From Haplodiscus bocki (taxonomy: Eukaryota), in assembly GCA_965655095.1 (NCBI GenBank), contig OZ296650.1, forward strand, positions 28,148,001 to 28,212,000: a DNA stretch of 64,000 bases, given 5' to 3'. Position numbers and translations under genes: made by a program. The notes below the pieces were generated by a model. It saw nothing but the letters and a program-made list of their open reading frames with translations. It did no database searches and was not told where the DNA came from. Of this stretch, positions 55,447 to 62,100 are shown in pieces; the stretch's first letter is position 1; the number at the start of each line of letters is the position of its first letter.

Positions 55447-56005
55447 TCAGCGCTGATCAGCTCTGATTCAGAATACTTTCAGGTCTGTTTCAGCGCTGTT
55501 CATTACCTGAAAATCTCAACAGCGCTGATTCAGCTCTGAACAGCGCTGAAAACCGAAATTTTCAGAGCTAAAAATCAGCGCTGAAACAGCGCTGTTCAGC
55601 TCTGAAACAGAGCTGATTCAGAGCTGAACAGCGCTGATTTTCTCTGAAACAGCTCTGAAACTGGAAATTTTCAGAGCAAAAAAATCAGCGCTGAATCAGC
55701 TGTTTCAGCGCTGATTTTCTCTGAAACAGAGCTGATTTTCTCTGAAACAGCGCTGAAACACCAAATTTTCAGAGCTAAAAATCAGCGCTGAAACAGCGCT
55801 GTTCAGCTCTGAAACAGCTGATTCAGAGCTGAACAGCGCTGATTTTCTCTGACACAGCGCTGAAAAACCAAAAATCCAGAGCAAGGAAAATCAGCTCTGA
55901 ATCAGTGCTGTTTCAGCGCTGATTTTCCCTGAAAGAGCTGATACCCACCGAAGCCTTCCTAAACAGCTCTCATCATTCCTGATTTTCCCCTGAGACAACG
56001 CTGAA
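55447..56005. repeat. palindromic CAGCGCTG/CAGAGCTG/CAGCTCTG minisatellite
   Basis: Dozens of CAG-NN-CTG octamers spaced ~10-11 bp; cagagc(t/a)a..aaatcag anchors near 55561, 55670, 55768, 55876 give a ~105-bp subunit and ~207-bp higher order. Confidence 0.95.
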
Positions 56006-56029
56006 CATCCCGAGACATCTCATTTTTTT

Positions 56030-56885
56030 CCGCAAACTTCTGCAGGAAAGCTCAGATCTTAAAGCTTTCCTGGAATTTTAGAATTATTCCGTTATGGCAA
56101 AAATAGATCTTATTCTCTTTCCGCAGATTTTCTCTAGGTAACCACAGATCTTAAGCTCTGGAAATTTGGATCTTAGTGTTTTTTCGCAAATTTCTGCAGG
56201 AAAGCTCAGATCTTAAGCTTTCCTGGAAATTTAGAAATTATTCGGTTATGGCAAAAATAGATCTTATTCTCTTTCCGCAGATTTTCTCTATGTAACCACA
56301 GATCTTAAGCTCTGGAAATTTTGATCTTAGTCTTTTTTCGCAAATTTCTGCGGGAAAGCTTAGATCTTATCTTTCCGGGAAATATAGAAATTATTCCGTT
56401 ATGGCAAAAATAGATCTAATTCTCTTTCCGCAGATTTTCTCTAGGTAACCCCAATTCTTAAGCTCTCTGGAAATTTGGATCTTAGTCTTTTTTCGCGACT
56501 TTCTGCGGGAAAGCTAAGATCTTATCTTTCCTGGAAATATAGAAAATATTCCGTTATGGCAAAAATAGATCTTATTCTCTTTCCCCAGATTTTCTCTAGG
56601 TAATCCCAGATCTTAAGCTCTCTGGAAATGTAGATCTGTTTTTTTTTCGCAAATTTCTGCGGGAAAGCTTAGATTTTACGCTTTCTGGAAAATAGATCTC
56701 ATCCTTTTTTTTCGCAAAGGTCTGCAGGTAACCTTCCATTTTATATGCTTTCTGGAAAATTATTGCCTATTCCTCGGCAGAACCTAGATCTCATTCATTT
56801 TTAGTGAGTTGCTGCAGGAAAGTTTAGATCTCACTTGCTGGAATTTCAGATCTCATTCTCCTTCGGTAAAAACTAGATCTTTCTA
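56030..56885. repeat. ~154-bp tandem repeat built of ~38-bp AGATCT-centred subunits
   Basis: gttatggcaaaaatagatc at 56091, 56245, 56398, 56553; decays to the right. Confidence 0.95.
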
Positions 56886-57492
56886 AAAAGAGAAGAAAAA
56901 AATTTTTTTACAAAAAAGAACGATAAAAAAGCATCATTATGAAAAATAGTCTTTTCTCAAGTCTTTCTGTCCAAAAAACTTCAGACACACTGACCAAGGC
57001 CACTTCTCAAGTTCTGTAGGGCATTGACGTTGCTGAAACAGAAAAACAGAAGAAACTAGAAAATGGCACTCGGAGAGCGCAGATCCCGCGAAAGCCCTTG
57101 GAACTCCGATATCCTGGATCGTAACCCAGTCGTTGATATTTCAGATCGCTGATCCCTTTTGTGTCTTTGCGTCCACACAGATTTATAAACGACCATTTCT
57201 CTGGTCATATTGTTTAAGTGTACAGCAGTGGTGCAGACGGGAGACTCCGGAGATGAAGATTCTGGGTTGAAGCCCCGGTGACCACGAAATTTTATAATTG
57301 TCCCGCGGATCAGAACAGTAACAAAATATAAAATTGAAAAATTATCTTTTGTCACCGGGGATCGAACCCACAATCTCTCGAGACTCGCATATATACCACT
57401 CGTCCACCCTTGCGCAAGTCATCGACGGAATAAGTTGTATATATGTATGAACCACTACTGCACTGAAAGACTGGCTATAATTTCCCACTATC

Positions 57493-57709
57493 AAAATCGA
57501 CCAGTAGTTCATGAGAAACAGTTATCCGGATCCCAGATCCGGATTTCAATCCGGATCACGCCCAACTTTGAACTCGGTCTTCCTATGATCATAACCTCCC
57601 TACTCACCAAATTTCATCAAAATCGGACCAGTAGTTTATGAGAAATCCTGCTAACAAACAAACAGACACACGAAGGTGATTGCAATATCCCGCTTTTCGC
57701 GGGATAACA
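57493..57709. repeat. ~217-bp direct repeat copy 1 (element 5' module)
   Basis: Near-identical to 58876-59093. Confidence 0.95.
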
Positions 57710-57725
57710 GACAAACAAAAAATTT

Positions 57726-57799
57726 TGTCCACACAGAGGTTCGAGCTCTCGACTCTCGCGTTTTTAGCACAATGCTCTTACCGACTGAGCTATAGGGCC
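57726..57799 (-). tRNA. tRNA-Ile-derived pseudo-tRNA, anticodon AAA (copy 1)
   Basis: GGCCCTATAGCTCAGTCGGTAAGAGCATTGTGCTAAAAACGCGA...; T-loop CTCGAAC variant; followed by a T-run. Confidence 0.7.
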
Positions 57800-57821
57800 G
57801 TACACATCAAACAAAAAATTT

Positions 57822-57895
57822 TGTCCACACAGAGGTTCGAGCTCTCGACTCTCGCGTTTTTAGCACAATGCTCTTACCGACTGAGCTATAGGGCC
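57822..57895 (-). tRNA. tRNA-Ile-derived pseudo-tRNA, anticodon AAA (copy 2)
   Basis: Identical to copy 1 at 96-bp spacing. Confidence 0.7.
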
Positions 57896-57963
57896 GTACA
57901 CATCTGAATACTATTATCAGATTATTATTATCAGATTACTATTATCAGATTAACAAAAAATTT

Positions 57964-58037
57964 TGGCCACACAGAGGTTCGAACTCTCGACCCTCGCGTT
58001 TTTAGCACAATGCTCTTACCGACTGAGCTATAGGGCC
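57964..58037 (-). tRNA. tRNA-Ile-derived tRNA-like gene, anticodon AAA (copy 3, best fold)
   Basis: 74 nt; GGCC/GGCC-A acceptor end, D stem GCTC/GAGC, anticodon arm TTGTG-CTAAAAA-CGCGA, GTTCGAACC B box, T6 terminator. Confidence 0.75.
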
Positions 58038-58077
58038 GTACACATCTGATTACTATTATCAGATTAACAAAAACCTT

Positions 58078-58151
58078 TGGCCACACAGAGGTTCGAACTC
58101 TCGACCCTCGCGTTTTTAGCACAATCCTCTTACCGACTGAGCTATAGGGCC
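58078..58151 (-). tRNA. tRNA-Ile-derived pseudo-tRNA, anticodon AAA (copy 4)
   Basis: As copy 3 with one D-stem substitution. Confidence 0.7.
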
Positions 58152-58342
58152 GTACTCAGCTGATTAGTCTTATCAGATTACTATTATCCTGGATCTGATT
58201 GAAATCTTGATCCAATCAGGATCTCCAGATAACTGTTATCAGGATCCAACAGGACATCCTGGATCGTAACCCAGTCGTTGATATACATTACCTCCTATTT
58301 TGAGAAATCTTGCTAACAAACAAACAGACAAACAAAAAATTT

Positions 58343-58416
58343 TGTCCACACAGAGGTTCGAACTCTCGACCCTCGCGTTTTTAGCACAATGCTCTTATCG
58401 ACTGAGCTATAGGGCC
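58343..58416 (-). tRNA. tRNA-Ile-derived pseudo-tRNA, anticodon AAA (copy 5)
   Basis: Same body; D-loop GG changed to GA. Confidence 0.7.
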
Positions 58417-58610
58417 GTACTGATCTGATTACTCTTATCAGATTACTATTATCAGATTACTATTATCCTGGATCTAATTGAAATCCTGATCCAATCAGGA
58501 TCTCCGGATAACTGTTATCAGGATCCAACAGGATATCCTGGATCGTAACCCAGTCGTTAATATACATTACCTATTTTGAGAAATCCTGCTAACAAACAAA
58601 CAAAAAATTT

Positions 58611-58684
58611 TGTCCACACAGAGGTTCGAACTCTCGACCCTCGCATTTTTAGCACAATGCTCTTACCGACTGAGTTATAGGGCC
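58611..58684 (-). tRNA. tRNA-Ile-derived pseudo-tRNA, anticodon AAA (copy 6)
   Basis: Same body; substitutions in the D and anticodon stems. Confidence 0.7.
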
Positions 58685-58724
58685 GTACACATCTGATTAC
58701 TATTATCAGATTAACAAATAACTT

Positions 58725-58798
58725 TCGCCACACAGAGGTTCGAACACTCGACCCTCGCGTTTTTAGCACAATGCTCTTATCGACTGAGCTATAGGGCC
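58725..58798 (-). tRNA. tRNA-Ile-derived pseudo-tRNA, anticodon AAA (copy 7)
   Basis: Same body; several substitutions. Confidence 0.7.
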
Positions 58799-58875
58799 GT
58801 ACTCCTCTGATTACTCTTATCAGATTAGTATTATCAGGTTACTATTATCCTGGATCTGATTGAAATCCTGATCCA

Positions 58876-59093
58876 AAAATCCGACCAGTAGTTCATGAGA
58901 AACAGTTATCCGGATCTCAGATCCGGATTTCAATCCGGATCACGCCCAACGTTGAACTCGGTCTTCCTATGATCATTACCTCCCTACTCACCAAATTTCG
59001 TCAAAATCCGACCAGTAGTTTCTGGGAAATCCTGCTAACAAAAAAACAGACACACGAAGGTGATTGCAATATCCCGCTTTTCGCGGGATAACA
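58876..59093. repeat. ~217-bp direct repeat copy 2 (element 5' module)
   Basis: Near-identical to 57493-57709. Confidence 0.95.
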
Positions 59094-59104
59094 ACTAATA
59101 TCAC

Positions 59105-62100
59105 AACCAAAACAGGTTGTGCTTCACGAAGATCGATCTCTCGAACTTCTCACAAGAGCGAAACAAGCCGAGTACAGAGAGAAACAAAGCGATGTTTTTG
59201 GACGGACTCGACGACATTTTAGAAAGTTTGTGTCTTGGTTTTGGTGGCATCGGCCAACCTTTTCACCTTTTCAAAAAACTTGTACGGAAACCATCAAAAC
59301 CATTGTACACTTCCAAAACGACAAAGACCACATTTCCAAGAAATGGACTGTTTTTTATTTGGCATGGTATGAGATGTCAAACACACGACGTAAAAAAAAA
59401 CAAAGTATCAAACGTAGACTCTGAAAACCAGCCCAGCCAAACCTTGACTCTGCATTTGAACAAAGAACACGTATTGTTTCAAGTAGAGAGATCTCAGCAA
59501 ATTCTCAAAACAACTTTTTTAGTTACAACTAAAGAATCAAACCAAACAGAGCTCAAAAAGACATTTTTGGAACGTAGTCAACGTCGTTTTGGAAAGTTTC
59601 TATTTTGCTCAAGGAACAAAAGCTGTTTTTATAAGTATTCGGTATCGCAAGACATCTCAAACGCAGGATGTAAAGAGCCAAGGTACCAAACGTAGCCTTC
59701 AAAAACTAGCGCAGGCAAAACCCAACACTGCAGTCGAACAAAAATAGGTATTAATTCACGAATATTAATCTATCGAACTTCTCACAACACCTTTTTCAAT
59801 CACCACTAGAGAAACAAGCCAAGTACAGCTCAAAGCGAAGACTTTGGGCCGCCCTCAACGTCATTTTAAGAGGAATGTTAACTGGTTTTGGTGACATTGG
59901 CCGACATTTTCAAAGATTTGTACAGAAACTTTCAAAAGGAATGTACACAATCCAAAACGACGAAGACCACGTTGCCAAAAAATGAAGAACTGTTTTTTTA
60001 ACAATGGGTACTGTATATCTCAAATACACGACTTAAAACCCATTATCAAACGAAGCTTTCGACAACCAGCGCAGCCCAAACGTGACTCTGCATTTGAAGA
60101 AAAAACACGCATTGTTTCAAGCAGAGAGATCTGAGGAAGTTTTCAAAACAGATTTTTTAGTTACCACCAAAGAAACAAGCCCAGCAGAGCTCAAAAAAAA
60201 CTTTTTTGGAACGTACTCAACATTGTTTTGGAAGGTTTCTATTTTGCTCAAGAAACAAAAGCTGTTTTTGTAAGCTGTTTTTATAAGTATTCGATAGCAC
60301 AAGACATCTCAAACGCAGGATGTAAAGAGCCAAAATACCAAACGTAGCCTTCGAAGTCTGGCGCAGCCGAAACTTGACTGCATTCGAAAAAAAAACACGT
60401 ATTGTTCCAAGTAGAGAGATCTGAGGAGGTTCTCGAAACAATTTTTTTTTGTTACAACCAAAGAAAAAAGCAGAGCAGCGCTCAAAAAGACATTTTTGGA
60501 ACGTACTCAACGTCTTTTTGGAAACTTGGTGTTTTGCTTTCGGTGAAATTGGCCAATATTTTTCGGAAGGTTTGTGCGAAAATCATCAAAACAAATGCAC
60601 ACAATACAAAACGACGACGACCACGTTTCCGAAAGAATCAAAAGCTGTTTTTATAAGTATTCGGTATCGCAGGACATCTCAAACGCAGGATGTAAAGAGC
60701 CAACGTACCAAACGTAGCCTTCAAAAACTAGCGCAGGCAAAACCCAACACTGCAGTCGAACAAAAATAGGTATTAATTCACGAACATTAATCTATCGAAC
60801 TTCTCACAACACCTTTTTCAATCACCACTAGAGAAACAAGCCAAGCACAGCTCAAAGCGAAGACTTTGGGCCGCCCTCAACGTCATTTTAAGAGGAATGT
60901 TAACTGGTTTTGGTGACATTGGCCGACATTTTCAAAGATTTGTACAGAAACTTTCAAAAGGAATGTACACAATCCAAAACGACGAAGACCACGTTGCCAA
61001 AAAATGAAGAACTGTTTTTTTAACAATGGGTACTGTATATCTCAAATACACGACTTAAAACCCATTATCAAACGAAGCTTTCGACAACCAGCGCAGCCCA
61101 AACGTGACTCTGCATTTGAAGAAAAAACACGCATTGTTTCAAGCAGAGAGATCTGAGGAAGTTTTCAAAACAGATTTTTTAGTTACCACCAAAGAAACAA
61201 GCCCAGCAGAGCTCAAAAAAAAACAATTTTGGAACGTACTCAACGTTGTTTTGGAAGGTTTCTATTTTGCTCAAGAAACAAAAGCTGTTTTTATAAGTAT
61301 TCGATAGCACAAGACATCTCAAACGCAGGATGTAAAGAGCCAAAGTACCAAACGTAGCCTTCGAAGTCTGGCGCAGCCGAAACTTGACTGCATTCGAACA
61401 AAAAACACGTATTGTTCCAAGTAGAGAGATCTGAGGAGGTTCTCGAAACAATTTTTTTTGTTACAACCAAAGAAAAATGCAGAGCAGCGCTCAAAAAGAC
61501 TTTTTGGAACGTACTCAACGTCTTTTTGGAAACTTGGTGTTTTGCTTTCGGTGAAATTGGCCAATATTTTTCGGAAGGTTTGTGCGAAAATCATCAAAAC
61601 AAATGCACACAATACAAAACGACGGAGACCACGTTTCCGAAAGAATCAAAAGCTGTTTTTATAAGTATTCGGTATCGCAGGACATCTCAAACGCAGGATG
61701 TAAAGAGCCAAAGTACCAAACGTAGCGTTCGAAAACTAGCGCAGCCAAAACGTGACTCTGCATTTGAACCAGAAACACGTATTGTTTCAAGTGGAGAGAT
61801 CTGAGGAAGTTCTCAAAACAGCTTTTTTAGTTACAACCAAAGCAACAAGCCCACCAGAGCTCAAAAAGACATTTTTGGAACGTACTCAACGTCGTTTTGG
61901 AAAGTTTCTGTTTTGCTCAAGAAACAGCTGTTTTTATAAGTATTCGATATCACAAGACATCTCAAACGCAGGATGTAAAGAGCCAAAGTACCGAACCTAG
62001 CCTTCGAAAACTGGCGCAGCCGAAACGTGATTCTGCATTTGAACAAAGAACACGTATTGTTCCAAGTAGAGAGACCTCAGGAAGTTATCAAAACATATTT

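Follow-up and report, generated by a model that had tools for sequence, protein, structure and literature searches.

The locus described here raises the question of what kind of DNA carries seven tRNA-like genes in a row, all in the same orientation, between two copies of one 5' module. It lies in a 64,000-nucleotide stretch of the Haplodiscus bocki genome, hereafter the window, which covers positions 28148001-28212000 of contig C3 (OZ296650.1) in the 1.5-Gb assembly G000 (GCA_965655095.1); genome-wide searches were run on that assembly. The analysis leads us to conclude, with considerable confidence, that the minus strand of window positions 57055-59090 is a copy of a non-coding, non-autonomous Helentron (HINE), and that this copy is a composite of two members of one young family.

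The boundaries of the element were determined from empty sites. The element sits in a host repeat, of which 30 copies were fetched; 24 were empty, with window position ~57056 joined directly to ~59090, and six, including the window copy, were filled. The 24 empty paralogs read ..GAAGAAAC|AACTAATATC.., and the filled site contained no duplicated bases, with a positional ambiguity of 3 nt. Among 100 listed 3' ends, CTAG was followed by TT in about 97, and the base after that was variable. Similarly, of 100 listed 5' ends, about 95 had TT immediately ahead of ATCCCGCG, with A, T, or G as the variable base preceding TT. A 5' end starting with RTTATCCC was dropped because the base before TTATCCC varied in the 100 listed flanks. 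With the convention that the element runs from TATCCC to CTAGT, the genome-wide flanks indicate insertion at T^T without target-site duplication and give the coordinates 57055-59090, which are within 1-3 nt of the boundaries (57054-59093) proposed in the original prediction. Insertion between two Ts on the element strand, with no target-site duplication, is thus supported. Because six of the 30 fetched copies of the host repeat carry the Helentron, the host repeat multiplied further after the insertion.

The element and its surroundings are composed of the following features.

57055-59090, minus strand: whole composite HINE, 2036 bp, at T^T in the host repeat (empty-site paralogs and genome-wide flank statistics; 3-nt boundary ambiguity).
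57055-57059, minus strand: 3' terminus, CTAGT on the element strand, then a flanking T.
57066-57080, minus strand: 3' imperfect palindrome, GCGCTC-TCC-GAGTGC, 11-12 nt from the terminus.
57083-57095, minus strand: 3' subterminal inverted repeat (subTIR), reading GCTTTCGCGGGAT on the element strand; its start is ~41 nt away from the 3' terminus.
57096-57139, minus strand: 3' region common to family members, with homology to a section of the long internal spacer (repeat family D5).
57140-57492, minus strand: body X of a second non-autonomous subfamily, 353 nt.
57493-57706, minus strand: inner 5' module with 5' terminus, palindromic 5' subTIR at 57687-57705; head of a complete X-type element, 57055-57706.
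57707-58876, minus strand: central tandem-repeat array of seven tRNA-Ile-derived units, with short and long spacers and a T6 run after each unit.
57726-57799, minus strand: tRNA-like unit 1 (Rfam RF00005).
57822-57895, minus strand: tRNA-like unit 2 (Rfam RF00005).
57964-58037, minus strand: tRNA-like unit 3 (Rfam RF00005).
58078-58151, minus strand: tRNA-like unit 4 (Rfam RF00005).
58343-58416, minus strand: tRNA-like unit 5 (Rfam RF00005).
58611-58684, minus strand: tRNA-like unit 6 (Rfam RF00005).
58725-58798, minus strand: tRNA-like unit 7 (Rfam RF00005).
58877-59090, minus strand: outer 5' module with 5' terminus, beginning TATCCCGCG on the element strand; palindromic 5' subTIR at 59071-59089.
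56500-57054, no strand: left flank, host repeat, at least 114 candidate copies.
59091-60200, no strand: right flank, continuation of the left-flank host repeat, with empty-site paralogs.

The two 217-nt modules, at 57493-57709 and 58877-59093, were 95% identical to each other, and only one 3' end was present in the window element, reading ...GCGCTCTCCGAGTGCCATTTTCTAGTT on the minus strand and then T. These repeat coordinates agree with the arrangement seen earlier, namely two 5' modules of ~217 bp, a single 3' end, and all units between the modules. Each module terminated in an exact 19-nt palindrome, ATCCCGC-TTTTC-GCGGGAT, for which 0.01 matches were expected by chance, and the 5' subTIR ATCCCGCGAAAAGC, starting at element nt 2, is part of this palindrome. 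The 13-nt inverted partner ATCCCGCGAAAGC was found at 57083-57095 and was complementary to the 5' subTIR save for one 1-nt indel; on the minus strand it was followed by a short imperfect palindrome and then ...CATTTTCTAGTT. The asymmetric subterminal inverted repeats of the original prediction are therefore real, and their distance from the element end is ~2 nt on the 5' side and ~41 nt on the 3' side. When folded as DNA, the 5' palindrome reached -8.7 kcal/mol (z = -3.7 versus shuffles), in line with the 5' hairpin that had been predicted. The 3' stem-loop proposed at the same time is visible in the sequence, but its folding did not exceed that of shuffled sequence. The 3' palindrome was conserved throughout the family, with 974 genomic matches to the 37-nt 3' end at up to two mismatches and none for the control. 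A match to window 57053-57139 was present in loci L003 (the sequence of which contains a run of N), L009, and L011.

A longer, protein-coding relative was found through the list of 5' termini, in which one terminus lay 7.8 kb upstream of a same-strand match to Helitron_like_N; the interval C1:147361000-147381907 was then read. The relative extends from C1:147361955 to ~147374415 (~12.5 kb), and its 5' terminus and module were identical to those of the family. The module was followed by ~5 kb of unit repeat, with 18 units at E values up to 0.011, 15 of which were above the Rfam cut-off. An uninterrupted frame of 2203 amino acids contained DUF6570, OTU, Helitron_like_N (114.7 bits), PIF1, and a C-terminal Exo_endo_phos domain, with both an HUH motif (HAH) and a Walker A motif present, and the family 3' region came after the frame, with identical subTIR and hairpin. 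Five more Rep-bearing loci showed 97-99.5% identity to the coding copy over 3.6 kb, and C6:63147355, with a frame of 2225 amino acids, is a further candidate coding copy. The 2203-amino-acid frame has the protein architecture of a Helentron, and the Helentron classification is thus supported by a direct test. A Rep/Hel element with the same subterminal repeats, which the original prediction had proposed to look for, is represented by this copy at C1:147.36 Mb, the last ~10 nt of which deviate.

Several other candidates and Rep/helicase loci were encountered. A Rep/helicase family of 2369 amino acids (L055) was rejected as the partner, as the 5.2 kb upstream of its frame contained no family terminus. 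In the assembly as a whole there were at least 147 matches to Helitron_like_N, which came from several different Rep/helicase families whose open frames are 2200-2800 amino acids long; many of these loci were ~15-17 kb apart in head-to-tail clusters (e.g., C3:133.75-134.31 Mb, C9:1.74-1.83 Mb, and C9:18.6-18.98 Mb). A tandem 10.47-kb unit at C1:14078193-14099170 (L056, L057) was rejected as a coding element because it contained no long open frame. This unit at C1:14.08 Mb is repeated in tandem at least three times, and each repeat holds a 5'-truncated X-type copy.

HINEs are defined by palindromic subTIRs of 12-15 bp, at a distance from the element end of 2-4 nt on the 5' side and of 38-60 bp on the 3' side, a palindrome of 5-10 bp located 8-35 bp from the 3' end, insertion at TT with boundary Ts, optional central repeats, and a Rep/helicase/endonuclease partner (PMC4067079). 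The window element agreed with this definition in the length and position of the subTIRs, in the TT target without duplication, in its central repeats, and in having a coding partner, apart from the last ~10 nt of the latter. The 3' palindrome, at 11-12 nt from the end, was within the HINE range, with an imperfect 6-bp stem and a folding energy of z = 0.0. Taken together, the empty sites, the T^T flanks, the subTIR positions, and the Rep/PIF1/APE-encoding relative uphold the Helentron-type classification that had been made from the window sequence. From the young age of the family and from the filled and empty paralogs we infer that the short copies are mobilised by the partner protein in a rolling-circle manner.

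Family size was determined by exact or near-exact pattern searches of the assembly, in which the numbers for the 5' module and body X are lower bounds of candidates. The 217-nt 5' module gave at least 1089 genomic candidates, those scored being 94-98% identical, while the exact 5' terminus gave 901 matches and an exact 33-nt piece of the tRNA-like unit gave 817. The family amounts to ~1000 dispersed copies, and at 94-99% identity it is young. Every independent locus that was mapped contained the 5' module, n units, and the 3' end in this order, with n ranging from 2 to 8 and sizes from 460 to ~1750 bp. Units were present at 35 places in the first 117 Mb of contig C1, and at 29 of these an exact family terminus lay within 8 kb, on the correct side and strand, in a comparison that took in perfect termini only. 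The units thus recur inside the same termini at independent sites, on C1 as well as at all mapped loci, and the 29 places with a matching terminus argue against a genome-wide dispersal of units independent of these termini.

The seven co-oriented units of 74 nt that were noticed at the outset all lie on the minus strand and scored 29-48.6 bits against Rfam RF00005; ARAGORN reported a tRNA with anticodon AAA in three of the seven. The array had periods of 96-142 nt where spacers were short and 265-279 nt where they were long. A single-copy-looking host tRNA-Ile(AAT) gene at C1:9.49 Mb scored 65.6 bits, compared with 28-48.6 bits for the units, and a tandem array of host tRNA-Ile(AAT) at C5:79527729-79612423 (L063, period ~378 bp) held copies of 40-61 bits. 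One tRNA-Ile copy in L063 was mutated to anticodon ATT, and this locus supplied most of the 212 reverse-strand pattern matches. Between the unit consensus and host tRNA-Ile(AAT), 6-7 of the 74 positions differed. Among other changes in the units, the anticodon is altered from AAT to AAA at its third base, acceptor pair 5:68 is a C.T mismatch, and the first T-stem pair (49:65) is G.G.

A survey of 102 units from 20 places yielded anticodon AAA in 100 units, and 96 units had four or more consecutive Ts within the next 16 nt downstream. On average, the units diverged from their consensus by 5.4%, with 2.6% in the A box, 6.1% in the B box, and 5.9% elsewhere, and stems were not clearly spared. An element-type unit at C1:135925360 (L062) had AAT rather than AAA, representing either the ancestral state or a back-mutation. 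Judged by sequence, the unit core is a decayed 74-nt copy of a host tRNA-Ile(AAT) gene, and the units derive from one uptake of a tRNA-Ile gene whose decay preceded the expansion of the family. They retain sequences resembling the A and B promoter boxes and the terminator of RNA polymerase III (Pol III). The original prediction had described the array as captured and amplified in this particular copy; this view was not sustained, as the array is the normal central repeat of the family and is also found in the protein-coding element.

The inner part of the window element belongs to a second subfamily. Body X (353 nt) gave at least 732 genomic candidates with 93-98% identity, and the layout of this subfamily, with 5' module, X, and 3' end in ~690 bp, was read in L069 and was supported by matching coordinate pairs elsewhere. 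X contains an inverted pair of 26-nt arms, 57257-57282 and 57351-57376, that are 85% complementary; these arms resemble the T-arm and acceptor halves of a tRNA other than tRNA-Ile. Length variants occur among the 5' modules. The layout identifies the second 5' module as the head of a complete X-type element at 57055-57706, with an array-type head joined directly to its 5' terminus. The junction between the outer and inner parts, GTTTGTCTGT|TATCCC, is a T^T within the normal post-unit spacer. Multi-headed elements, with an internal 5' terminus right after the unit spacer and no 3' end in between, were also found at the independent loci L004, L074, and L079, and an internal 5' terminus after the unit spacer was present in about 12 of 100 listed 5' flanks. 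The six filled paralogs varied in unit number, and L014 was without window 57328-58530. Because these six paralogs differ in unit number, arrays change length after insertion.

The order in which the composite was put together was considered in view of these data. An X-type element may have been in place first, with a 3'-truncated array-type copy joined exactly at its 5' boundary by aborted or unterminated rolling-circle synthesis or by local rearrangement, so that the composite never moved as a unit. We consider this course of events unlikely, but it retains an appreciable chance: all six filled copies derive from one event in the host repeat, and tandem and multi-headed forms are frequent in the family. 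Against it, the T^T junction in a normal spacer is what would be expected from a family insertion into an array, and the composites L004 and L079 close with one 3' end followed by non-family flank, which fits termination at the first 3' signal. Other explanations concern the nature of the element itself. It is scarcely credible that an unrelated DNA element inserted twice, independently, into a tRNA-derived short interspersed element (SINE) or a host tRNA cluster, leaving units that have nothing to do with the termini. The units are indeed tRNA-derived with Pol III signals, large host tandem tRNA-Ile arrays exist, and six of the 35 C1 places had no exact terminus listed nearby. However, the units are internal, in tandem, and located behind a 217-nt module, and they show none of the body, tail, or target duplication of a retroposed SINE, a distinction already drawn in the original prediction. 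They lie between the same 5' and 3' ends at every mapped locus and near a terminus at 29 of the 35 C1 places, and they share derived changes, such as the AAA anticodon, that are absent from the host genes. Moreover, the coding element has the same array inside its termini, and the whole block 57055-59090 is missing from 24 paralogous sites.

DINE-1-like elements were formerly classed as cut-and-paste MITEs (miniature inverted-repeat transposable elements), which are terminal-inverted-repeat transposons, and the window element resembles these in its 13-nt inverted repeat near both ends, its small size, its non-coding nature, and its high copy number. A cut-and-paste MITE is still a very improbable alternative to a rolling-circle element. 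The empty sites are without target-site duplication, the inverted repeats are subterminal and asymmetric, and the two ends are unlike (TATCCC... versus ...CTAGT). The termini do not belong to a family of another transposition type, as the longer relative with the same ends encodes Rep/helicase/endonuclease and not a DDE transposase. That the units are working tRNA genes spread by a transposon, for example, a novel tRNA reading UUU, is extremely improbable, even though they pass the Rfam tRNA threshold and retain A and B boxes and a terminator. Their scores are 17-37 bits below that of the host tRNA-Ile gene, mismatches are fixed at acceptor 5:68 and T-stem 49:65, an AAA anticodon is placed on an Ile body, and the 5.4% mean divergence from the unit consensus shows no clear sparing of stems. 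A low score, a fixed AAA anticodon, and fixed stem mismatches are all at odds with a functional tRNA-Ile gene, and it is very unlikely on this comparison that the units act as working tRNAs.

Some observations weigh against the conclusion that the window holds a composite HINE with a competent partner. The empty-site proof covers one insertion only, with a 3-nt ambiguity, and the six filled paralogs stem from one shared insertion, so that the composite was seen at a single independent target. Public short reads on the locus gave only ~80-nt contigs at very high depth, which did not bridge the array; these contigs did include the empty-site join of the paralogs. Among the public runs containing the locus there was no RNA run. 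The six C1 places without an exact terminus listed nearby, mentioned above, belong here as well. The 3' stem-loop has an imperfect 6-bp stem with one G.T pair and a folding energy equal to that of shuffled sequence (z = 0.0). Finally, the last ~10 nt of the coding copy read TTTTTTACTTG, whereas the HINE consensus is ATTTTCTAGTT, in the one coding copy that was read, and the canonical family 3' end is ...CATTTTCTAGT; the coding copy thus has an approximate 3' boundary and is a putative competent partner.

Two unit-rich regions and the surroundings of the element were also recorded. No exact terminus was listed near C1:36152361-36198689 (46 kb, 24 unit matches) or C1:116697508-116721805 (24 kb, 12 matches); these clusters, which count among the six such places on C1, may be arrays grown to satellite size or stacked long elements. 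In the window, the host repeat contains a 154-bp tandem repeat at 56025-56696 (4.4 copies), and its right side has internally repeated segments. A ~109-bp tandem repeat rich in CAGCGCTGA motifs is located just upstream of the host repeat, at 55514-55942.

For the composite HINE, the features described above suggest the following mechanism. The 2203-amino-acid protein would mobilise the short copies in trans: Rep would nick the 5' end, the helicase would displace one strand as far as the first 3' signal, which consists of subTIR, hairpin, and CTAGT, and the displaced strand would integrate at T^T. In the case of the window copy, an X-type element would have landed at the spacer T^T of another copy's array, and a later round of transposition from the outer 5' end would stop at the first 3' end, fixing the composite. 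Unit number would change by slippage or unequal exchange. The units are predicted to be able to bind TFIIIC/Pol III, yet not to be working tRNAs. It is a doubtful proposal, to which we assign a small chance, that the tRNA-derived units are a working part of the transposon, acting as arrays of TFIIIC/Pol III sites both upstream of the Rep/helicase gene and within short copies. If this were true, the units might keep chromatin open or insulated, or give rise to small RNAs, aiding transposition or escape from silencing, and a Helentron family would be seeding thousands of new Pol III/TFIIIC sites across its host genome.

The element type is well known, but no published description of the tRNA-derived cargo was found, and a full-text literature search found no published link of Helentrons or Helitrons to tRNA-derived arrays. 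Known non-autonomous Helentrons, such as Drosophila DINE-1 and oyster Cg_HINE, spread anonymous satellite-like repeats, whereas the repeat described here is traceable to a host gene and has an intact-looking Pol III promoter and terminator. The family would clearly exemplify the uptake and multiplication of a non-coding RNA gene by a rolling-circle transposon. It also provides a natural setting in which to study whether chromatin boundaries are altered by dispersed tDNA-like sites, and its multi-headed composites illustrate how new element variants could arise from a stop at the first 3' signal. A coral genome paper reported more than 20,000 "tRNA" repeat hits in two species without explanation (PMC12005156), and tRNA-carrying Helentrons may be a candidate explanation for the tens of thousands of such hits in some coral genomes.

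The family was compared with known systems. It shares with canonical Helitrons a Rep-HUH and a PIF1-like helicase, insertion without target duplication, a 3' hairpin, here a weak one, and a CTAG close to the 3' end. A canonical Helitron has the form 5'-TC...CTRR-3' and is inserted between A and T; the present family differs in its T^T target, its TATCCC 5' end, its subterminal inverted repeats, and the C-terminal APE endonuclease of its partner. The likeness to HINEs and DINE-1-like elements (Thomas et al., 2014, PMC4067079) includes palindromic subTIRs, a 3' palindrome, imperfect here, TT insertion, and central tandem repeats, the last being known from DINE-1 and from mite or mosquito HINEs (PMC4067079). 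As in HINEs, short copies far outnumber the coding partners, and the partner encodes Rep, helicase, and APE endonuclease, here with OTU in addition. The monomer of those elements is an anonymous micro- or minisatellite (PMC4067079), whereas here it is a recognisable tRNA-Ile-derived unit of Pol III type, and the coding element here carries ~5 kb of repeat upstream of its frame.

The Pacific oyster Cg_HINE elements are likewise non-autonomous Helentrons of a marine invertebrate that spread short tandem arrays of variable monomer number genome-wide, and their monomers are reported to be related to classical satellites and unrelated to tRNA genes (Vojvoda Zeljko et al., 2020, PMC7492417). The family described here differs in having two kinds of body, the tRNA array and X, and in often forming multi-headed composites. 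In Arabidopsis, a tRNA-Cys cluster overlaps annotated Helitrons, and its authors speculated that failed termination builds the array; Helitron prediction tools gave no reliable element, and the link is hypothetical and concerns a single locus (PMC10701932). According to the same 2023 paper, if it were confirmed that a Helitron had captured a tRNA, this would be the first instance of non-coding RNA capture in that family (PMC10701932). Both systems have tandem tRNA units tied to a rolling-circle annotation, but in contrast to the Arabidopsis cluster (PMC10701932), the termini, empty sites, ~1000 copies, and a coding partner were demonstrated for the family in Haplodiscus bocki.

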